Shown: in pieces, positions 604-9,383 of the stretch
How the letters are laid out: the number at the start of each line of letters is the position of its first letter
Numbering within the stretch: position 1 is the first letter of the stretch
IMG/VR virus record: IMGVR_UViG_3300042350_002797
Coordinates: 1-64,000 of that record
Reading direction: 5' to 3' (one strand)
DNA length: 64,000 bases
The notes under the pieces: model-generated
The model's database searches: none
What the model was told of the DNA's origin: nothing
Seen by the model: the letters and a program-made list of their open reading frames with translations, nothing else
Translations under genes and position numbers: made by a program

Positions 604-635
604 ATAGACATAGTAAACAGTAAGGAGCGAAACAA

Positions 636-923
636 ATGCAAAAACATACTTGTCCGGAATGTAACGGATCAACACGTAAACCCTATAACCTAGACCCTAG
701 CTGGAAACGGGTCATTGCTGGCTACGATGCTGCAACAGATACACTACCCTGCCATAACTGCGGTTCACAGTATATGTTCGGCCGTGCTACAGGCTTAGTG
801 GGTCTGAACAGACTGGGCGTACCCTGTACACACATCTACAAAGGTCAGAACGCAGGACGCTGCTTGACAGAGTACACCTGCATCCACTGCGATGATAGAT
901 ATCAAATTGATTCTGGGGATTAA
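636..923 (+). CDS. Zn-finger-like hypothetical protein
   Basis: CPEC, CHNC, CIHC pairs; AAGGAGCG RBS upstream. Confidence 0.8.
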   Translation: MQKHTCPECNGSTRKPYNLDPSWKRVIAGYDAATDTLPCHNCGSQYMFGRATGLVGLNRLGVPCTHIYKGQNAGRCLTEYTCIHCDDRYQIDSGD

Positions 924-1863: not shown

Positions 1864-2058
1864 ATGCGTACATATGAAAATGTTGTTGAAATCGTAGCAA
1901 ACACACTGAGCCGTGCAGCACTAGGCGGCCCATTTGGATTCTATCTGTCAGATGCACAAATTGCCTACATCTACGGCAAGGACCGTGAAGTAGTAGAGAT
2001 GGACATTCAAATGGCCAAAGATATTGCTAATAAGAGATTGACAGACAGCTTTATCTAA
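1864..2058 (+). CDS. Hypothetical protein (64 aa; start re-called from 1795 to ATG 1864)
   Basis: GGAGG SD before ATG 1864; the longer call overlaps the 1727 ORF. Confidence 0.7.
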   Translation: MRTYENVVEIVANTLSRAALGGPFGFYLSDAQIAYIYGKDREVVEMDIQMAKDIANKRLTDSFI

Positions 2059-2066
2059 GTTATAAT
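2038..2066 (+). promoter_or_regulatory. sigma70-type early promoter (perfect consensus)
   Basis: TTGACA (2038-2043), 17 bp, TATAAT (2061-2066). Confidence 0.92.
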
Positions 2067-2071
2067 ATACA

Positions 2072-2095
2072 CTACACACTAGCAATAGTGTGTAG
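2072..2095 (+). promoter_or_regulatory. 5' leader hairpin, 10-bp stem with GCAA (GNRA) tetraloop
   Basis: CTACACACTA-GCAA-TAGTGTGTAG. Confidence 0.75.
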
Positions 2096-2130
2096 CAATA
2101 TTACACACTTATCAACAGAGCGGAGCTGAA

Positions 2131-2961
2131 ATGAAACATACAATGAACTTTGAAATCCCTAAGCTGAACAAGTCTGTACAAGAAACAGACGAGCAGATCA
2201 AAGAGCGACTGCGTGAGCGTTTTGAGATACTGAACGACATGACCCGTGCTGTAAAGAAGGGTGATGTACGTGCTATGATTGTAACGGGTCCGCCAGGCGT
2301 GGGCAAGAGCTTTGGTGTAGAAGAAGTACTAAGCAAACACGACCTAATGGCCACAGTGGCTAACAACAGCAAGCTTAAGAAGTATGAAGTAGTCAAAGGC
2401 GCTATGAGTGCGCTGGGTCTGTACTCAAAGTTATACGAGTACAAGGACGCTAAGAGTATCCTAGTGTTTGATGACTGCGATAGTGTATTGCAAGATGAAC
2501 TAAGCCTTAACATTCTAAAGGCTGCACTAGACAGTTCTAAGAAGCGTACCATACACTGGAACACTGACAGCAGACTGTTACGTGACCAGGGCGCACCTAA
2601 TAGCTTTGAGTTCAAGGGCGGTGCTATCTTTATCACTAACATTAAGTTTGAGAATGTACGTAGTAAGAAGCTACAGGATCACCTAGCAGCATTAGAGTCA
2701 CGCTGCCACTACTTGGATCTGACTATTGATACAGAGCGCGAGAAGATGCTGCGTATTGAACAGATCATAGAAGACGGCATGCTGTTAGAGTATGAGTTTA
2801 GTCAAGAAGAACAAGCTGAGCTAATCAGCTTTATAGACAACAACAAGAAGAAACTACGCGAACTGTCACTGCGTACAGTACTTAAGATAGCGGACTTGCG
2901 TAAGAGCTTTCCCTATAAGTGGCAAAGTGTAGCAGAGGTTACTTGTATGCGTCGCGGTTGA
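2131..2961 (+). CDS. AAA+/P-loop ATPase
   Basis: Walker A GPPGVGKS, Walker B LVFDD, ALESR arginine-finger-like motif. Confidence 0.85.
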   Translation: MKHTMNFEIPKLNKSVQETDEQIKERLRERFEILNDMTRAVKKGDVRAMIVTGPPGVGKSFGVEEVLSKHDLMATVANNSKLKKYEVVKGAMSALGLYSKLYEYKDAKSILVFDDCDSVLQDELSLNILKAALDSSKKRTIHWNTDSRLLRDQGAPNSFEFKGGAIFITNIKFENVRSKKLQDHLAALESRCHYLDLTIDTEREKMLRIEQIIEDGMLLEYEFSQEEQAELISFIDNNKKKLRELSLRTVLKIADLRKSFPYKWQSVAEVTCMRRG

Positions 2962-3051
2962 TTCGCTCCCAACCAGCATACTAGGTAAGGGCCAAGGTGG
3001 CCCACTTGATCCCCAGTGTCCGATTCGCTCCCGGCTCTGGGGATTTTTTTT
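2956..3051 (+). ncRNA. Candidate structured 3'-UTR/small RNA with two identical AUUCGCUCC loops
   Basis: GGTTG-ATTCGCTCC-CAACC (2956-2974); GGGCC-AAGGT-GGCCC; CCG-ATTCGCTCC-CGG inside the terminator stem ATCCCCAG/CTGGGGAT. Confidence 0.6.
3009..3051 (+). terminator. Rho-independent terminator closing the early region
   Basis: 8-bp GC-rich stem (3009-3016 / 3037-3044) followed by a T run to 3051. Confidence 0.85.
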
Positions 3052-3168
3052 CATCGAGAGATTGAGAAAAAGATTTCGAAAAGATCGGGGGTCGGGGCTT
3101 TATTATTTTGATTTTTTGTTGTTTTTTTGCAACACGTACCGATGCAAAATCACCACCTTGAAAGGAAA

Positions 3169-3250
3169 TAGTAGCTATTTAAAAATTTTCGCAGCTGCCA
3201 AAAACTAACCCCTAGGTACCCGTTTAGTAGCTGTAAAAAATTTTCGCAGC
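3169..3250. repeat. Direct repeat TAGTAGCT-N3/4-AAAAATTTTCGCAGC, two copies
   Basis: Copies at 3169-3195 and 3225-3250; degenerate third copy AAAAATCTTTTGCGGCTGC at 4417-4435. Confidence 0.8.
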
Positions 3251-3278
3251 ACTATTTTTTTATTGTGCAGATACTCTT

Positions 3279-3926
3279 TTACAAGTATCCTGGTCGAACC
3301 ATTGATCGGAAAAATTCACGTTTATGACTAGATTCTTCGCCCCATTCTTTACTAGTTAAATCCTGTATACTAATCTGATTCTCTATGTCCGGAAAGTAGT
3401 TATAAGGTAAAGGGTCTAACGAAAGAGTTAATGTTATTCTTGGTGTAGGGTTATCTTCTGCAAATTCCACACTATGTATTTCCATTGGCCTAATCAAAGT
3501 AGCATCTGTAATTTCACATCGAGTTTGTTCAACTAAATCGTCACGATTATAAGGGTAATATTTCAAGCCATTAGGCAGCATAATTCCACCTTGGTCAACA
3601 TATTCTGGTTTAGGTTCCCAAAATGTAGTCCATGTATTTGCAGTGTTCAATATAGGTATATTAACTCTTATGGGTATCACTGTGCTATCTTTGTGTGGAC
3701 TACCATGTGTGTTATTTTTCATAAAATAAGCACTGACCATAATCACCTTCATATCTAGATGATCAAATGCAGTCAATATTTCTGGAACTGCATCTGTGAA
3801 TTCTTGCCATTTGAAAATGTGAAATGTACTATTATATCTATCTTTAGTTTTACTTATAAATTCTCTAGTTTTAGTCTGTATAGCTTCTAAGTGTTGTACA
3901 GTAATTTTATGCCAATATTTTTTCAT
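3279..3926 (-). CDS. Putative Fe(II)/2OG oxygenase-like or cupin protein
   Basis: HKD (HxD) motif plus distal His in MEIHSVE; TAAATA late-promoter motif and purine-rich leader upstream. Confidence 0.5.
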   Translation of the reverse strand: MKKYWHKITVQHLEAIQTKTREFISKTKDRYNSTFHIFKWQEFTDAVPEILTAFDHLDMKVIMVSAYFMKNNTHGSPHKDSTVIPIRVNIPILNTANTWTTFWEPKPEYVDQGGIMLPNGLKYYPYNRDDLVEQTRCEITDATLIRPMEIHSVEFAEDNPTPRITLTLSLDPLPYNYFPDIENQISIQDLTSKEWGEESSHKREFFRSMVRPGYL

Positions 3927-3962
3927 ATTTCTACTTCTTTCTTTGATTTAATATACGCATAT

Positions 3963-4163
3963 TTATTCCTTAATTCTACACACTGCTTGTATTTGCAATT
4001 CTCTATGATGTATAATGACCTTACGTACTTCTTCGCAAGCAGCATGAGTAGTATACTCATGTTCCCAAGCACGCCATTCACCATCGGCTATGACCAATAC
4101 CCACAGTATCCATACTGTCATTAGTAGAACTCTGCACCTGGACGATATCCACGCTGCTCCCAT
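3963..4163 (-). CDS. Small hypothetical protein (true start probably downstream of 4163)
   Basis: Short ORF with hydrophobic segment and C...C pair, in the - strand gene run. Confidence 0.4.
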   Translation of the reverse strand: MGAAWISSRCRVLLMTVWILWVLVIADGEWRAWEHEYTTHAACEEVRKVIIHHRELQIQAVCRIKE

Positions 4164-4381
4164 TCGCCCAATTTACGGTCATTCCAATATATAAGAAAAT
4201 CGTCTCTACTTTCAAAATATTTTTGGAATTCTTCTGTGATACTTAGACAACTCCACATGTCTTGTCCGCCCAATTCGCCTTTCATGAATTCAGTATCGCA
4301 GTGCCAATACAGTACTTCCAGTTCTTCTCTAGGCAGTTCAGCAGCGTTCAGTGCCACTGTAAGTATAAGTGTTTTGAGCAT
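4121..4381 (-). CDS. Small putative exported protein
   Basis: AAGGAG SD, signal-peptide-like N-terminus, two Cys; TAAATA motif upstream. Confidence 0.6.
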   Translation of the reverse strand: MLKTLILTVALNAAELPREELEVLYWHCDTEFMKGELGGQDMWSCLSITEEFQKYFESRDDFLIYWNDRKLGEWEQRGYRPGAEFY

Positions 4382-4482
4382 GGTTGTGCTCCTTAAATTG
4401 TTATTTATGGGTTGTTAAAAATCTTTTGCGGCTGCGCTGACGCTTCGCGTTAGAGTATCTAGCGCGGTTGCCCTGCAGGTAT

Positions 4483-5337
4483 TCACGCTGGACTGTCTTG
4501 ATCTTTCTGGTCTAGTTTGCGCTTTAACAATGTGCCTAGACCAGTTTTTTTCTTTGGAGTATCCGCAGGTGGTGCAGGCGGCATCATTTTATTAGTACGT
4601 GGTCCAGATTTAATCTCATCATAATCAGGAATACTAGCACCGCCATCACTAATTGGATCCATCAAGACCAGTTGTGGTCCTACACTACTGCCACGCACAC
4701 GTATATTGTTCACGTGCAGATCCACATTCCAGTCTGGGTTTTCCTGTATAATTTTATCAATCAACAACAGTGCTTCTTTAAGTTGATCATCACGTATGTT
4801 TGTGTAGTTACTGCGTTCTACAGCACGATTAATTTGATTGGATATTTCTCTCCATACTGCATATGATTTGTTAGTAGTTCCTTCTAGATAACGCATATTG
4901 AATTCGTCGTTGAACAAACGTTCGTACATGCCAATAAGTGTTCTAGCTGGAAAGCTATCGCCCTGCTGTAGTTTTTCTATACGATAACGTGGACGTTGAT
5001 TACCCTTAGGATCTTGTGTAATGTCTATGTTATAGACCTGTGGAAAGAATGGATTGTGATAGCCCTGCTGTTTTAAGTCACGTATTTCCATAACGTACTT
5101 ATAGTAAGCATCTTTATCCAGTTTAGCAGTAAGATGTGGTTTCTTAATAAATTCGTGTGGATCGCGGGGATTAGTTTGTCCGCCACTGTACCAGCCTGGT
5201 TGTACGCCTTTGTTAAGTTCGCTGTCATTGTCGCGTTCTTGTTTGTCTTTAAGGGCATCAAAGTCAAAGCTAGGTTTACGATATCTTATCTTTTGATCAG
5301 TAGTATCGTATTCTTGTAGTATTTCTATAATTCGCAT
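4483..5337 (-). CDS. Protein-kinase-like (PKL) fold protein
   Basis: GWYSG glycine-loop-like, FIKK lysine, DLHVNN catalytic loop, LMDP metal-binding motif. Confidence 0.6.
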   Translation of the reverse strand: MRIIEILQEYDTTDQKIRYRKPSFDFDALKDKQERDNDSELNKGVQPGWYSGGQTNPRDPHEFIKKPHLTAKLDKDAYYKYVMEIRDLKQQGYHNPFFPQVYNIDITQDPKGNQRPRYRIEKLQQGDSFPARTLIGMYERLFNDEFNMRYLEGTTNKSYAVWREISNQINRAVERSNYTNIRDDQLKEALLLIDKIIQENPDWNVDLHVNNIRVRGSSVGPQLVLMDPISDGGASIPDYDEIKSGPRTNKMMPPAPPADTPKKKTGLGTLLKRKLDQKDQDSPA

Positions 5338-5437
5338 GTGTATATTTAATCGTGATTACCGTAATCTGTATTTTTTAACATAACGACTATAACTGCTATC
5401 ACTATAAGTAGGAGAAATAAATTTATTAGATCAAACA

Positions 5438-5677
5438 TTATTTTAGTCCTTTTTTTCTGTTAGATTCTGCTATACCTGACTGTATCATTTTTTTAAACAT
5501 TAATACTACACGACTTTTTTCTTTTTCGCTGAGTATTTTTACTAGTGTAAGTTTATCGTCATAGCTTTTGGCATTGTCCAGGAATTCAGCCGGTACTGCC
5601 AATTTAGGCTTTTTCTTAGCCATTTCTTTCTTCATATTAGCTAGGGCCTTGTCAGGGTCGTCGTTATCAGTAGTCAT
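5438..5677 (-). CDS. Hypothetical basic protein
   Basis: 79-aa ORF, AAAGGA SD, TAAATA upstream. Confidence 0.65.
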   Translation of the reverse strand: MTTDNDDPDKALANMKKEMAKKKPKLAVPAEFLDNAKSYDDKLTLVKILSEKEKSRVVLMFKKMIQSGIAESNRKKGLK

Positions 5678-5703
5678 AGTGATCCTTTCTAAGTCTATTT
5701 TAT

Positions 5704-6483
5704 TTACTTAGGTTCGCAGTCCACCCAACGTAAATTATTATAGTGTTCATAGGGCCACGTACCCTTAGGTACTAAACAAGTGCCTAATTCAGGTTGGTGT
5801 TCCATGCGTATTTGTACCACAGCCCATATTAACCAAATAAGATATAATATAGCCACAGTACTGCTAGACCAGCACAGTATTTTATATTGTATGCGTTTTT
5901 TGCGACGTGCCCGAATCTTCTTTTGTTCTGCTGTTCGTCGCATCTCTGCAGCAATGACAATACTTTGTTCTTTGCCCACTTTCTTCATCATCTCTTCGAC
6001 ATCAAGATACAATGGACCTAATTCTGGTGGACTTTGATAGACCATAATTTCACGCAATTCTGCGCTCATGTGTTCTAGTTGTTTTTTAAGTAATACTCGC
6101 ATTAATGCACGTTTACCTAAACTGTCTTCGCCGTGATATACTTCAGTTCTGCTGCGACGTTCTTCTTCTTCAAATACTGCTAGACATTTATAATAGTTGT
6201 CAAAATATGTTCCAAGATGTTGGCCAATTTCTGTATAGATGTTAGTAGTTTCGCCACCCTTTTTGTTCAGTTCTATTATGCGATTTTTTTCTGTGATAAA
6301 CTGATTACGTTCAGCCACAGTAGGTTGACGATCCTTGAATTTATTGGCGAATTGGTCGTCAAGGTCTTTAAGGATATCTTTGACATCCCCAGCAGCACCT
6401 TTAATTTCTTTATATAGTTCGCACCCTTTTTTGACCGCCTGGACTGCTCCGTTGGCCAGGGCAAAAAGGGTTAGCGGATCCAA
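5704..6483 (-). CDS. Coiled-coil protein with C-terminal transmembrane helix (TTG start)
   Basis: 259 aa; basic stretch RARRKKR then hydrophobic helix; GGAG upstream of TTG. Confidence 0.75.
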   Translation of the reverse strand: MDPLTLFALANGAVQAVKKGCELYKEIKGAAGDVKDILKDLDDQFANKFKDRQPTVAERNQFITEKNRIIELNKKGGETTNIYTEIGQHLGTYFDNYYKCLAVFEEEERRSRTEVYHGEDSLGKRALMRVLLKKQLEHMSAELREIMVYQSPPELGPLYLDVEEMMKKVGKEQSIVIAAEMRRTAEQKKIRARRKKRIQYKILCWSSSTVAILYLIWLIWAVVQIRMEHQPELGTCLVPKGTWPYEHYNNLRWVDCEPK

Positions 6484-6531
6484 GATCTAGATCTCCGCAT
6501 GGTTCGCTCCAAATTGTTCGCTCAGTAGTAT

Positions 6532-6975
6532 TTACTTGGAGGAGCTATCTTTAGGGTACCATGGTGTCATTCTAGGACTGTTTTGTACACTGTAATTCAT
6601 GCATTCGGCTAAAAATTCAAAATTACGGCTCAGCGTATTGAATAAATGATAGTTGATCTGTTCTGCGTGGCTATAGCTGGCTTTGCCTATTTGATAAAAG
6701 TAATCTTGATTGATGCCACGTCGTTCTAGCATATTAGGAAACACTGCGGCTGCAAACAGTGCTTGATCTCCTAATACCTTAGCTGCATGAGCTGTTTGAA
6801 TAGATAATAGTGTTTCAGCCCAACTAGGCTGAGGTTGCCAGTCAGGTTTATCAGTATAGTTTGCTAATACCGCACTCATATATTGTTCTATATAAGTAGG
6901 TATAGGCCAACCATGACGATGTTTAGCTTGGTCTATGATATCAAACCAAGCTGAATAGTACTCAGGTTCAATCAT
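6532..6975 (-). CDS. Hypothetical helical protein
   Basis: 147-aa ORF directly after TATAAATA (6983-6990). Confidence 0.75.
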   Translation of the reverse strand: MIEPEYYSAWFDIIDQAKHRHGWPIPTYIEQYMSAVLANYTDKPDWQPQPSWAETLLSIQTAHAAKVLGDQALFAAAVFPNMLERRGINQDYFYQIGKASYSHAEQINYHLFNTLSRNFEFLAECMNYSVQNSPRMTPWYPKDSSSK

Positions 6976-6993
6976 ACACTATTATTTATAGTG

Positions 6994-8409
6994 TCATGGG
7001 TCAGTTGGCAGATTACTCAATAGTTGTCTTAATTTACTGCTTTCGACCTGTACTTTACTAACAGACACACTGATACCTTCAGTAGGATCAGAATTAACTG
7101 TACTATTTCTTTGTAAGTTGTTCAATATTTGACTGCTACGGCTAGTGGTATCTGCCTCTGTTTGCCCTTCTTCACCTGGGTCAGTAATTCTCAATGTATC
7201 AATATCAAAGTCTAAGTCAATTTTCATACCTACACCACTGCTGCTACGAGTTTTCATTAATTGAATTTGATACTTACCGCGTTCACGCATAGCACGACTG
7301 GTAAAGATACCAAACACATTATCCGCTGTCTGGATCTTACTAAGTCCGCCTGAAATATGACTGTGATCGTATTCTACTTCTTCTACTGCACCTCGATTCA
7401 ACTGTGCCGCTGTGACCAGCACACACTGTTTCTCCATAGCCAAGTTACGCAGCTCTTCGCTGACATACTTGTCTTTGACAAATAAGTTTTCTGCTGAAAT
7501 TTTTCTACTTTGAGGCATCAACAAGTCTAGATAATCGACTAGCAGTACATCTACCTTACGTCCTAGTTTGATTTCATATTCTTTAAGATAACTTCTTATA
7601 TCATTGGCTGTTTTGCCGCTGGGCATGTATTTGACTTGATACGTTCCAGATTTTTTTCCAATGACCTTAACTTTCATTTCAACATCATCAATATTTTTAA
7701 AAATATCTCTAGTAGGTATTTCAGTAATCATGCTATCAATACGCATACTGACCAATTCCTCACTAAGTTCTAATGTAAGATATACTACATTCATTCCTTG
7801 TAGTGCCCAGTTAACTCCAAGATTAGCTAAGAATAAACTTTTACCTGCACCTGATCCGCCAGCAAAGATATTCAATTCGCCTCGATTCATACCTCCGAAC
7901 AATCTTTTATCCACAGTTTGCCAACCTGTAGTCATTTGTCCATTTTTATCTTTTATTCGCATTAGTCTACTTCTCGGATCTTCAAAGTAGTCAGTGCCCA
8001 TGTCTTTAGTTAGTCCTACTTGCACTGCCTGCTTGACTAATTCTTCTACTGGGCCATATTCTCCTTTTTCTAACAAGTCAGCACTTTTTAAAATAGCCTG
8101 TTCTAATCCTTTATGTCTAATAAAAGTTTCAAAGTCTTGTAACAGCCAATCGTAGTGTTCTTCTTTCAAATCTCCTGGAGATTTTAAATCAGATTTTGTA
8201 GCCGCATTTACTATTTCATATGTAGGTAGTACGCTATGCTCTGATACATAATCGTTAATAAATTTAGCAGTGTTTTGTAATTTTCTATCAAACAACTCAT
8301 GATGAAAAATGCTTTGGCATCTTACAAAAGTTTCTGCATCATTCAACATCATTTCTAAGTAAAGATGTTGTATATCATATCCGTAGTCTGCGTTTTGTCT
8401 TGTAGTCAT
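6994..8409 (-). CDS. gp41: DnaB-family replicative helicase (T4 gp41-like)
   Basis: Walker A GGSGAGKS, LTLELSEE, LLVDYLDL, TAAQLNR, KTRSSSGVG. Confidence 0.93.
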   Translation of the reverse strand: MTTRQNADYGYDIQHLYLEMMLNDAETFVRCQSIFHHELFDRKLQNTAKFINDYVSEHSVLPTYEIVNAATKSDLKSPGDLKEEHYDWLLQDFETFIRHKGLEQAILKSADLLEKGEYGPVEELVKQAVQVGLTKDMGTDYFEDPRSRLMRIKDKNGQMTTGWQTVDKRLFGGMNRGELNIFAGGSGAGKSLFLANLGVNWALQGMNVVYLTLELSEELVSMRIDSMITEIPTRDIFKNIDDVEMKVKVIGKKSGTYQVKYMPSGKTANDIRSYLKEYEIKLGRKVDVLLVDYLDLLMPQSRKISAENLFVKDKYVSEELRNLAMEKQCVLVTAAQLNRGAVEEVEYDHSHISGGLSKIQTADNVFGIFTSRAMRERGKYQIQLMKTRSSSGVGMKIDLDFDIDTLRITDPGEEGQTEADTTSRSSQILNNLQRNSTVNSDPTEGISVSVSKVQVESSKLRQLLSNLPTDP

Positions 8410-9383
8410 ATTTTATTATATTTTATCTCTATGTGTTTAGTATCTTCGTTTGTTTGATAATTTACATGATTTTTAGTATGTGCCAATACTGCTCCAATTG
8501 CACTACTAGCATCGCCTGGCCAAGGTAAACTCCAAATGCCTCTCCATTGGTGTCTTAGTTGTCGATTAAATTTACTATTGTATGCACAGCCGCCCATATA
8601 AACAAGATTTCTAAAATTAGTTAAATTTCTAGCTTTAACCATTATGTAATCCATTTGTTCTTCAAATACTTTTTGAACTGCGGCGGCGATATCGCATTTA
8701 TCTTGATCAGTTAAGTTATAGTCAAAAGGCCAATTATATACACCTTTATGTAGATTATATTTTAGCACTGCTGGTTTTTTAAAATAGTCTAGCACAGTAT
8801 CATAGTATATAAATGGATTACCCTTATCGCTTAATTTTTGTAAAAAATGTTCTTGTGCAGCGGGTCTAAGTCCAATCAAATCTGTAAAGGCACTATAGAA
8901 TATACCTAAACTATTTGGATAGCTTTCGCTCCACAATTTTTCTAAATTCCTGCCATGCCCACTCCATATGCTTATAGTTTCAAATTCTCCTATAGCATCT
9001 ACAACGACCACGGCTGCTCTATTAAAATTACTAGTATAATACCCTGCGGCAGCATGACTATGATGGTGTGGTGTATAGATTATAGGGCAGTCAATATTAA
9101 ATTTTCTAAGATATACACTAGGTATATTGTCAATACTAAATGCTTCTTTATATTGTCCTGCTGTTAGTTGACGTAGTTTTTTTAAAAATGGACGTTCATA
9201 CCAATATACAGTTTCAGGTTCTCCGTATATTGTTATAGCATGATGTATAATTTCTTGATTTAGATAATGATCTCCTTGTATGTGTGTAAAGTCGCTACTT
9301 CTTCTATGCCATACAGGTTCGTTGTCTCTGAACACACATATGCTAGCATCGTGGTTTAGTGCATTAATACCCCATACAATCAT
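8406..9383 (-). CDS. Carbamoyltransferase (NodU/CmcH family), N-terminal Kae1-like domain only
   Basis: GINALNHDAS, HHHSHAAAGY, VVDAIGE, MGGCAYN, GDASSAIGA; no GPRALGNRS C-domain. Confidence 0.8.
   Translation of the reverse strand: MIVWGINALNHDASICVFRDNEPVWHRRSSDFTHIQGDHYLNQEIIHHAITIYGEPETVYWYERPFLKKLRQLTAGQYKEAFSIDNIPSVYLRKFNIDCPIIYTPHHHSHAAAGYYTSNFNRAAVVVVDAIGEFETISIWSGHGRNLEKLWSESYPNSLGIFYSAFTDLIGLRPAAQEHFLQKLSDKGNPFIYYDTVLDYFKKPAVLKYNLHKGVYNWPFDYNLTDQDKCDIAAAVQKVFEEQMDYIMVKARNLTNFRNLVYMGGCAYNSKFNRQLRHQWRGIWSLPWPGDASSAIGAVLAHTKNHVNYQTNEDTKHIEIKYNKI

Follow-up and report, generated by a model that had tools for sequence, protein, structure and literature searches.

Few phage sRNAs have a known mechanism, the examples being P1 C4, P22 sar, lambda OOP and P4 CI, and each of these is a narrow, cis-linked immunity device. 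In the immI region of phages P1 and P7, two loops of the C4 antisense RNA, which differ from each other in sequence, face two sites next to the RBS of a small upstream ORF (icd) that overlaps the start of the regulated antirepressor gene (ant) and is thought to be translationally coupled to it. C4 is made from the same operon, upstream of its targets, is processed out of that transcript, and also causes premature transcription termination. In Escherichia coli, the trans-acting, Hfq-dependent host sRNA RyhB uses a linear seed to pair at a single site in the initiation region of uof, a short upstream ORF whose translation is needed for translation of the overlapping fur gene, while OxyS uses two different hairpin loops to pair with two short sites (7-9 nt) of the fhlA mRNA, one covering the Shine-Dalgarno (SD) sequence and the other lying inside the coding region. 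IstR-1 acts at the tisB standby site, an upstream, unstructured ribosome-loading site that is distinct from the structured true start, is about 100 nt away from it and has no upstream ORF. Finally, the T4 proteins RegA and RegB are made early and act on a shared motif in the ribosome-binding sites of many early mRNAs, RegB doing so at GGAG, in a post-transcriptional shut-off of early genes.

The locus considered here lies in a 64,000-nt window (positions 1 to 64,000 of IMG/VR record IMGVR_UViG_3300042350_002797) of a 364-kb freshwater jumbo phage. It is the leader of a late-type gene on the minus strand, and it carries two copies of the signature extended SD motif of its phage group together with a short, overlapping upstream ORF (uORF). 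The original prediction held that this leader has two sites complementary to the loops of a candidate phage RNA, that the second site is the SD of a 9-codon uORF overlapping, out of frame, the weak TTG start of a 259-aa membrane-anchored coiled-coil gene, and that the arrangement follows that of C4/icd-ant, such that the RNA could gate the membrane protein or the leader could act as a sponge for the RNA. The sequence reads exactly as had been described, with TAAATA followed by CTACT, site 1, AATTT, site 2, a single C and the uORF, and the observation is therefore confirmed, with corrections. Complementarity to the loops is 7 nt for site 1 and 8 nt for site 2, since the final C of each site faces the A of the loop and does not pair, and two elements had been missed, namely the main ORF's own SD and the predicted hairpin that sequesters it. 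The features are collected in the following table, in which L followed by a number denotes a contig of a relative of the phage under study.

Coordinates of the leader, its gene and the proposed partner RNA within the 64,000-nt window, with the observations that bear on each
Feature	Position	Strand	Description	Observations
Late-promoter-like element	6523-6535	-	GTAAATACTACTG; TAAATA core at 6534-6529, overlapping the TAA stop (6534-6532) of the upstream 147-aa ORF (6975-6532)	TAAATA under-represented genome-wide (281 copies against 595-737 for permutations), yet within 60 nt upstream of 61 of 311 long ORFs, with a peak at 15-25 nt; precedes tail sheath, tail tube, head-tail adaptor and terminase genes; TAAATACTACTG occurs only here and before the sheath (42712) and adaptor (44928) genes
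Site 1	6516-6523	-	GAGCGAAC; GAGCGAA (6523-6517) complementary to the AUUCGCUCC loops; starts 5 nt after TAAATA, which would place it at or near the 5' end of a late transcript	Hybrid energy -10.4, site opening +1.5, net -8.7 kcal/mol; identical in this phage, L209, L011 and L022; GAGCGTAC in L010
Site 2	6502-6510	-	GGAGCGAAC; SD of the uORF; GGAGCGAA (6510-6503) complementary to the loops	Hybrid energy -12.9, opening +3.1, net -9.65 kcal/mol; with CC-ATG, identical to the consensus of 146 distinct early sites, A-GGAGCGAA-CC-ATG
uORF	6471-6500	-	9 codons (MRRSRSWIR); ATG at 6500, TAA at 6473-6471; overlaps the main TTG out of frame and ends 8 nt past it	Kept in relatives: 9 codons in L209 and L010, 15 in L011 and L022, 11 in L030; peptide not conserved; stop in the same Leu-Thr codons of the main ORF
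SD of the main ORF	6492-6496	-	GGAGA, 9 nt before TTG, inside the uORF	Relatives hold a third GGAGCGA-type site here: AGGAGCGAG in L209, GGGAGCGAC in L010, GGGAGCGAA in L011/L022
Predicted hairpin	6474-6498	-	GCGGA..UCUA/UGGA..UCCGC, enclosing the main SD and UUG start; contains the 12-nt palindrome AGATCTAGATCT (6494-6483)	Free energy -9.2 kcal/mol; 5.6% of shuffles fold as stably (modest support); analogous pairing of the GGAUCC start region with an upstream segment predicted in L011, L022 and L030; palindrome unique in the genome
Main ORF	5704-6483	-	259 aa, TTG start; all-helical protein with a C-terminal transmembrane anchor and strongly conserved N-terminus MDPLTLFALANGAV	AF2 model with mean pLDDT 78; in an Atlas cluster of about 1000 viral hypothetical proteins
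Proposed trans-acting RNA	2945-3051	+	Three hairpins at the 3' end of the early AAA-ATPase gene (2131-2961); AUUCGCUCC loops at 2961-2969 and 3023-3031; last hairpin an intrinsic terminator	Folding z-score -3.05; loop opening costs 0.15 kcal/mol
CUCCUCC	6538-6544	-	End of the upstream ORF; predicted to pair with UUUGGAG of site 2 in read-through transcripts, and would be absent from transcripts started at TAAATA	Minimum-free-energy fold of 6545-6440; inference only
Early initiation region	623-637	+	AGGAGCGAAacaaATG behind a TTGACA-17-TATACT promoter; another putative site for the same RNA, as is a second one at 1717-1729	

The TTG is the true start of the main ORF, as about 70 homologues start with ATG/GTG GAT CC at the same codon. 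A frameshift or assembly error as the origin of the TTG start and uORF is ruled out by these homologues and by the fact that six independent assemblies and 14 DNA runs carry the identical sequence. The string AGATCTAGATCTTGGATCC, which resembles BglII, XbaI and BamHI sites, was likewise considered and rejected as a cloning scar, since GGATCC simply represents the conserved Asp-Pro codons and the palindrome is unique to this lineage, within natural metagenome contigs. For the 259-aa protein, searches of Pfam and PHROGs gave no match, and Foldseek comparison of the AF2 model against PDB and AFDB gave no significant match, with weak syntaxin/t-SNARE-like hits that are not significant. A megablast search of a phage collection also found no match.

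Within this one genome, the evidence for the doubled site is weak when an energy criterion alone is applied. GAGCGAAC occurs three times in the window against 0.92 expected and seven times in the 364-kb genome, two of these being 14 nt apart, but two same-strand pairs of sites at or below -9 kcal/mol lie within 60 nt of each other against about 1.9 expected. The decisive support is comparative. Conservation of both sites in homologous genes had been named beforehand as a test, and the 20-nt block GAGCGAACAATTTGGAGCGA, comprising site 1, spacer and site 2, is 100% identical in four diverged lineages in which adjacent third codon positions are only 43-62% identical. More diverged two-site leaders head the operon of the same gene family in L030, with a 13-nt spacing, and in a 356-kb phage (G021), with a 41-nt spacing and again behind TAAATA. 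Doubled sites are otherwise absent from 536 kb of RNA-bearing loci; they are rare family-wide and specific to the operon of this membrane-protein family.

The proposed partner RNA is real and belongs to a large family, found at the 3' end of the early region of hundreds of freshwater phage contigs, that is not in Rfam: Rfam 15 gave no match at the gathering threshold anywhere in the window, and at E<=10 positions 2900-3100 gave only weak chance hits such as NsiR1 and atoC, and no C4. Text searches for the motifs and for phage anti-SD sRNAs found nothing relevant. The family comprises 54 distinct sequences with covarying stems and almost invariant, exposed loops. A MAFFT plus RNAalifold consensus failed because the stem lengths vary, but when folded one by one 44 of the sequences form three hairpins, and 55 of 72 AAA-ATPase loci carry both loops right after the stop codon. 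In metatranscriptomes, contigs matching positions 2000-7000 lie almost wholly over the AAA-ATPase gene and the RNA, beginning near 2842-2871, whereas none of the RNA libraries covers the leader.

The complement of the loops, GGAGCGAA, is the commonest early SD motif in these phages, accounting for 160 of 690 GGAG-type starts in RNA-bearing loci in one count and 213 of 793 in another. Of 146 distinct sites, 141 are on the strand of the RNA, behind sigma70-type promoters. Site 2 of the leader fits the group's criterion that the motif lie 1-4 nt before a start codon. The CGAA extension is not explained by the host 16S anti-SD, since GGAG followed by CGAA does not extend pairing with the universal GAUCACCUCC tail; this was rejected by reasoning. 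Motif and RNA co-occur genome by genome. RNA-bearing records hold 7-17 copies of AGGAGCGAA clustered upstream of the RNA, whereas the complete RNA-less relatives G001, G004 and G006 hold 0-2, and the leaders of their homologues lack sites. Furthermore, every contig with a two-site leader that is long enough to test carries the RNA, i.e. the phage under study, L209, L011/L139, L030/L128 and G021. In the phage under study, however, only 3-4 of about 20 early initiation regions carry the full 8-mer. The leader is not simply "a second target", as had been proposed, but one of many putative targets, since GGAGCGAA also heads early genes at 624, 1718 and 363677, and an 11-nt site heads a late gene at 258201. 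Within this target set it is atypical, as it has the consensus initiation region but lies on the strand opposite to the RNA and behind a late-type motif rather than a sigma70-type early promoter; the site at 258201 is another late member. Relative to the T4-type late promoter, an A/T-rich -10-like TATAAATA element without a -35 element, the TAAATA core is enriched about 8-fold upstream of ORFs, although the full 8-mer is not required here and its promoter role is inferred from position alone.

Placed beside the C4 system, the locus is similarly arranged but is not of the C4 type. Two loops are complementary to two sites, one of them the SD of a small upstream ORF that overlaps the downstream gene, but the RNA does not match C4 in Rfam, is trans-encoded 3.4 kb away on the other strand at the end of the early region, has identical loops and many other putative targets, and faces a gene for a tail-anchored membrane protein rather than an antirepressor. 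Coupling of uORF and gene is inferred from the weak start, the hairpin and the retention of a uORF in relatives. Compared with RyhB and uof-fur, a phage RNA would here use two hairpin loops against two sites; compared with OxyS-fhlA, the loops are identical and both sites are upstream, 14 nt apart; compared with IstR-1 and tisB, loading would occur through a translated uORF; and compared with RegA and RegB, the shared motif is matched by an RNA, and one late leader carries it twice. The interpretation given in the original prediction is therefore only partly supported: the RNA, the two complementary sites, the conserved uORF, the late-type TAAATA motif shared with the sheath and adaptor genes, and the resemblance in logic to C4-icd-ant all stand, whereas membership of the C4 type does not, and the evidence does not separate gating from sponging.

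We favour, tentatively, the view that the leader is a conserved post-transcriptional control region for a late-transcribed membrane-protein gene. What sequence and comparison establish is the anatomy, i.e. a late-promoter-like motif followed by two copies of the extended SD, a uORF with the group's canonical early initiation region (GGAGCGAACCATG) overlapping a weak UUG start, and a main SD and start codon within a predicted hairpin; the mechanism, including RNA-mRNA pairing and any regulatory effect, is inferred from predicted energies and co-occurrence. In this view, ribosomes would load efficiently at the uORF and open the hairpin by their passage, and termination 8 nt past the UUG would allow coupled initiation or re-initiation of the main ORF. 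The early-made RNA would pair through its two open loops with GAGCGAA and GGAGCGAA, possibly one loop per site, occluding the uORF SD, so that the membrane protein would not be translated while the RNA is in excess. The doubled site would make this leader the RNA's highest-avidity target and give a delay or threshold for a late membrane protein, and the same RNA probably also acts on the single-site early initiation regions. Several points weigh against this view. Pairing is only 7 and 8 nt, the hairpin is only marginally more stable than shuffles (p about 0.06), and site 1 may be partly upstream of the late transcription start. Because the loops are almost invariant, the search for loop-site covariation had little to work with: no variant-loop RNAs were present in the loci examined, a scan for position-2 variants gave almost only chance hits, the few AAU or ACU variants show no matching shift in the SD, and in the few loci with an AAUCGCUCC loop there is no shift towards GGAGCGAU.

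The non-complementary spacer ACAATTTG and the trailing C are as conserved as the sites, and hence the block could be read as a unit by something else. The strongest rival, although unlikely, is that the two GGAGCGA copies are a standby SD plus the group's optimal initiation region, serving to maximize uORF translation and so coupled expression of a gene with a poor, hairpin-bound UUG start, with complementarity to the RNA being incidental for this leader. GGAGCGAACCATG may indeed simply be the strongest initiation region available, and the uORF is conserved while its peptide is not. However, an RNA with two accessible loops perfectly complementary to the motif is encoded by the same phage and should bind any exposed copy, doubled sites occur only in RNA-bearing genomes and only at this operon, and RNA-less relatives use ordinary leaders. 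Less likely still is the sponge model, in which the abundant late leader, with two sites facing two identical loops, titrates the RNA and relieves repression of other GGAGCGAA-bearing mRNAs, control of the membrane protein being secondary. Although high avidity and the several other targets fit this idea, most of those targets are early genes whose late re-activation has no obvious use, and the block is always tied to a uORF overlapping the start of this gene family or heads its operon, which points to cis control.

Equally doubtful is the possibility that the direct repeat GAGCGAAC-N6-GAGCGAAC, as RNA or as DNA just downstream of the late promoter, is the operator of a phage protein, be it a translational repressor like RegA, a nuclease like RegB that acts at GGAG, or a transcription factor, with the RNA having a different role. 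The invariance of the whole block, its position 5 nt after TAAATA, and the extreme invariance of the RNA loops, which would also fit a conserved protein partner, are compatible with this, but no candidate protein was identified, the placement of the motif at SD distance from start codons in 146 distinct sites makes it an RNA-level element, and exact complementarity to the loops and genome-level co-occurrence would be left unexplained. Least likely is that the leader is a relic of module shuffling, which placed an early-type initiation region and a local 14-nt duplication before the gene, with an accidental uORF. The region is mosaic, with relatives having tandem paralogues or quite different leaders, and the pairing statistics within one genome are unremarkable; however, the block is fully conserved where synonymous sites are near saturation, a uORF is kept in five variants despite a rewritten interior, and more diverged two-site leaders exist.

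A broader reading, which is not excluded but must be considered unlikely on present evidence, is that the leader is the high-avidity node of an RNA-based temporal switch, in which the twin-loop RNA reads a phage-specific extension of the SD that marks a whole class of early mRNAs across hundreds of freshwater phages. The RNA would shut that class off, as an RNA counterpart of RegA/RegB, and, through the double site and coupled uORF, would also time a late tail-anchored membrane protein, possibly one related to lysis or the envelope.

In contrast to the phage sRNAs with known mechanisms, a trans-acting RNA here appears to recognize a private ribosome-binding code shared by dozens of genes per genome, in hundreds of uncultured freshwater phages from 30 kb to over 350 kb. 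The doubled-site leader, being short and conserved and making sharp predictions for site, loop and uORF mutants, is the cleanest single place to test that idea. If confirmed, it would add an RNA-based global timing mechanism to phage biology, and would also give a function-linked handle on a large family of unknown membrane proteins.

The stretch examined is the first 64 kb of a jumbo-phage record of 364,554 bp from IMG/VR with a G+C content of 36%. The record is linear, but its early region runs across the ends, with about 20 strong, near-consensus TTGACA-17-TATAAT promoters lying on the plus strand from about 356 kb to the end and on through 1-3 kb; hence the genome is probably circularly permuted or the record is cut inside the early region. 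Each of these promoters is followed by a stereotyped G-poor leader of about 25 nt and a GGAGC-type Shine-Dalgarno (SD) sequence. The early region ends at an AAA-ATPase gene (phrog_1250), which is followed by the candidate RNA. The leader under study lies downstream of a DnaB-like helicase gene and a Nol-like carbamoyltransferase gene, which are immediately upstream on the same strand, and it therefore marks a boundary between replication genes and a late-type transcription unit. The coordinates of these and the other features are collected in the table.

Positions of the leader, the candidate RNA and related features (window coordinates unless a genome or locus is named)
Feature	Position	Strand	Sequence or remark
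Early promoters and leaders	575-640, 931-990, 1668-1730, 2038-2133	+	examples within the window
Early promoters and leaders, end of record	genome 356-364.5 kb	+
AAA-ATPase gene	2131-2961		phrog_1250
Candidate RNA	2945-3051	+	stretch folded, 2945-3052
Metatranscriptome contigs over the AAA gene and the RNA	2842-3193		X19, X25, X26, X29 (metatranscriptome assemblies)
Site 1	6523-6516	-	GAGCGAAC
Site 2	6510-6502	-	GGAGCGAAC
uORF	6500-6471	-	9 codons, MRRSRSWIR
SD of the 259-aa ORF	6496-6492	-	GGAGA
Start of the 259-aa ORF	6483	-	TTG, out of frame with the uORF
Predicted hairpin enclosing the main SD and start	6498-6474	-	-9.2 kcal/mol
Palindrome, 12 nt, perfect	6483-6494	-	AGATCTAGATCT
End of the upstream 147-aa ORF	6538-6544	-	CUCCUCC
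DnaB-like helicase and Nol-like carbamoyltransferase genes	6994-9383	-
TAAATA before structural genes, examples	42712, 44928, 38568, 34896, 33289	-
Second late-type target	genome 258217-258190 (outside the window)	-	TAAATA-N16-GGGAGCGAATC-aact-ATG
Same arrangement in a relative	G019:22500-22550
Tandem paralogues of the membrane-protein gene in relatives	L010:904-2468, L030:3231-4780, L202:2063-3734
Homologue of the 259-aa protein near a GH19 gene	L002 (MW202462) 3025-5576; L003 (MW202484) 3022-5025		phages of about 35-42 kb

The original prediction described a late leader with two sites facing the loops of the candidate RNA and an overlapping uORF, and this observation was confirmed base for base. 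The TAA stop of the 147-aa ORF overlaps TAAATA, after which come CTACT, site 1, AATTT, site 2 and a C, followed by the uORF, within which the 259-aa ORF begins. Three details needed correcting, however. The loops (AUUCGCUCC) are complementary to GAGCGAA (7 nt) and GGAGCGAA (8 nt), whereas the trailing C is not complementary; the TTG start has its own SD, GGAGA; and TTG is the true start, since about 70 homologues begin ATG or GTG GAT CC at the same codon, which also explains the BamHI-like GGATCC. The same sequence stands in six independent assemblies and in many lake metagenome runs.

The RNA is real and belongs to a large undescribed family. Its sequence folds into three hairpins (z-score -3.05), of which the first and third each present a 9-nt AUUCGCUCC loop, the third being an intrinsic terminator. 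A scan of viral contigs for two such loops 40-70 nt apart gave at least 119 stretches, about half of which are chance or repeat matches, and 62 loci (54 distinct sequences) share the architecture with quite different stems. Of the 54 sequences, 44 fold on their own into three hairpins, usually with the loops open. When the upstream, highly conserved AAA ATPase was used as an anchor, more than 589 freshwater viral contigs, from 5 kb fragments up to 383 kb, were found to encode a close relative, and among the best 72 loci long enough to judge, 55 have both loops directly after the stop codon (the family is represented by loci L082-L200 and L205-L278 of this analysis). Variants are rare and have AAUCGCUCC or ACUCGCUCC in one loop, 7-nt UCGCUCC loops, or only one loop; the core UCGCUCC is essentially invariant. 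Rfam has no such family. In RNA libraries that contain the RNA's words, the contigs aligned to 2000-7000 lie almost wholly over the AAA gene and the RNA. The short contigs of four metatranscriptome assemblies cover the 3' end of the AAA gene plus the RNA and little or nothing from the neighbouring genes; the deepest run from about 2842 to 3035 or 3193, the X19 contig extends 140 nt past the terminator, and one library also covers 5450-5663. This pattern fits an abundant or stable 3'-end RNA, although, as the runs were chosen for containing these words, it is supporting evidence and not proof.

The sites in the leader correspond to the signature SD motif of this phage group. In 536 kb of RNA-bearing loci, 160 of 690 GGAG-type SD starts read GGAGCGAA, while the next most common variant, CGAC, is seen 34 times; in the loci anchored on the AAA gene, the figure is 213 of 793. 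There are 146 distinct sites, 141 of which lie on the RNA's strand, each following a sigma70-type promoter and a G-poor leader of about 25 nt, and their consensus is A-GGAGCGAA-CC-ATG. Whole records that carry the RNA hold 7-17 copies of AGGAGCGAA, clustered just upstream of the RNA gene, whereas complete RNA-less relatives (genomes G001, G004 and G006) hold 0-2. Pairing with the universal 16S tail, given the anti-SD sequence, cannot explain the CGAA extension. The initiation region of the uORF in this leader, GGAGCGAACCATG, is therefore a perfect copy of the canonical early initiation region, placed behind a late-type promoter.

By its sequence, the leader is late-type. TAAATA is strongly avoided in the genome, with 281 copies against 595-737 for its permutations, and yet it sits within 60 nt upstream of 61 of 311 long ORFs, mostly 15-25 nt from the start, and precedes the tail sheath, tail tube, adaptor, terminase and virion protein genes. 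By its placement, it behaves as the late promoter core. The extended form TAAATACTACTG occurs only before the sheath gene, the adaptor gene and this leader. By analogy with T4 late promoters, the transcript is inferred to begin about at the G of site 1. The CUCCUCC at the end of the upstream ORF is predicted to pair with site 2 in read-through transcripts, in which case only transcripts started at TAAATA would expose the uORF SD. A second late-type target, outside the window, has 11 nt of complementarity to the loop plus its closing pair and heads a 295-aa ORF that looks secreted (MKKYITII...); the same arrangement is conserved in a relative, G019.

The leader is also conserved. The 20-nt block GAGCGAACAATTTGGAGCGA is identical in four lineages, i.e., this phage and those designated L209, L011 and L022, in which the first 80 codons of the gene are only 43-62% identical at third positions; a further relative, L010, has a degenerate copy. 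Every variant keeps an ATG 1-3 nt after site 2 and a uORF of 9, 9, 9, 15 or 15 codons, the interior of which is rewritten each time while the stop falls in the same Leu-Thr codons of the main ORF. In the relatives the main start is ATG or GTG and its SD is a third GGAGCGA-type site; in this phage, that third site has been replaced by GGAGA plus a 12-nt palindrome that lies inside the uORF and is unique in the 364-kb genome, and the start is TTG. Two more diverged leaders head the operon of the same gene family: locus L030 has GGAGCGAA-AACTA-GGAGCGAA-CA-ATG with an 11-codon uORF, and the 356-kb phage G021 has TAAATA, GGGAGCGAATCG, about 30 nt, and then GGAGCGAATCA-ATG. Elsewhere in RNA-bearing loci, doubled sites do not occur. 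Every contig with such a leader that is long enough to check carries the RNA, while complete RNA-less genomes that have the gene use unrelated leaders.

Based on predicted energies, the loops cost 0.15 kcal/mol to open, and net binding is -9.65 kcal/mol for site 2 and -8.7 kcal/mol for site 1. The predicted hairpin that encloses the main SD and the UUG is only marginally more stable than shuffled sequences, with 5.6% of shuffles as stable. Similar pairing of the GGAUCC start region is predicted in three relatives. Within this genome alone, two sites at the -9 kcal/mol level within 60 nt are no rarer than chance, and therefore the case rests on comparison and not on single-genome statistics.

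The protein inferred to be regulated is all-helical with a C-terminal membrane anchor and a strongly conserved N-terminus. It belongs to a cluster of about 1000 viral hypothetical proteins and has no significant family or fold match. In relatives, the MDPLTLFALANGAV membrane-protein gene occurs as tandem paralogues, one type ending ...YVGR and the other having the transmembrane anchor and a Cys-containing tail, whereas this phage has a single copy directly behind the leader. In two small phage genomes (MW202462 and MW202484), a homologue lies between tail-fibre-like genes and a GH19-type gene annotated 'chitinase A', a few genes upstream of the latter and among small membrane-protein genes. 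This may be a lysis-cassette context, and it hints at a lysis or envelope role without showing one.

In the mechanism proposed, ribosomes would load at the canonical initiation region of the uORF, open the hairpin and terminate 8 nt past the UUG, thereby allowing coupled initiation of the membrane protein. The twin-loop RNA, made early, would bind sites 1 and 2, occlude the uORF SD, and keep the protein off until the RNA is outnumbered or decays. The analysis itself establishes the anatomy of the leader, its conservation, its complementarity to the loops, its co-occurrence with the RNA, and the presence of the RNA region in RNA libraries; that the two RNAs pair, that the two ORFs are coupled, and the direction and timing of any effect are inferences. 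Alternatively, the leader may be a strong initiation region or standby site with no RNA control, a sponge for the RNA, a protein operator, or a relic of recombination. The main point that the pairing model does not explain is the spacer between the sites, which is not complementary to the loops and yet is equally conserved.

The original prediction's reading, which likened the leader to the P1 C4-icd-ant system, is supported in part. The proposed logic matches three known cases, namely P1 C4-icd-ant, in which two loops face two sites and a small ORF overlaps the regulated gene; RyhB-uof-fur, in which a trans sRNA blocks a coupled uORF; and OxyS-fhlA, in which two loops form kissing contacts with two sites. 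However, the RNA is not a member of the C4 family, as there is no Rfam match, the RNA is trans-encoded, its loops are identical, and the cargo gene is different. The inferred antisense translational control is embedded in a large undescribed phage RNA/SD system. Judged by the breadth of its targets, the RNA would be an RNA analogue of T4 RegA/RegB acting at early ribosome-binding sites.
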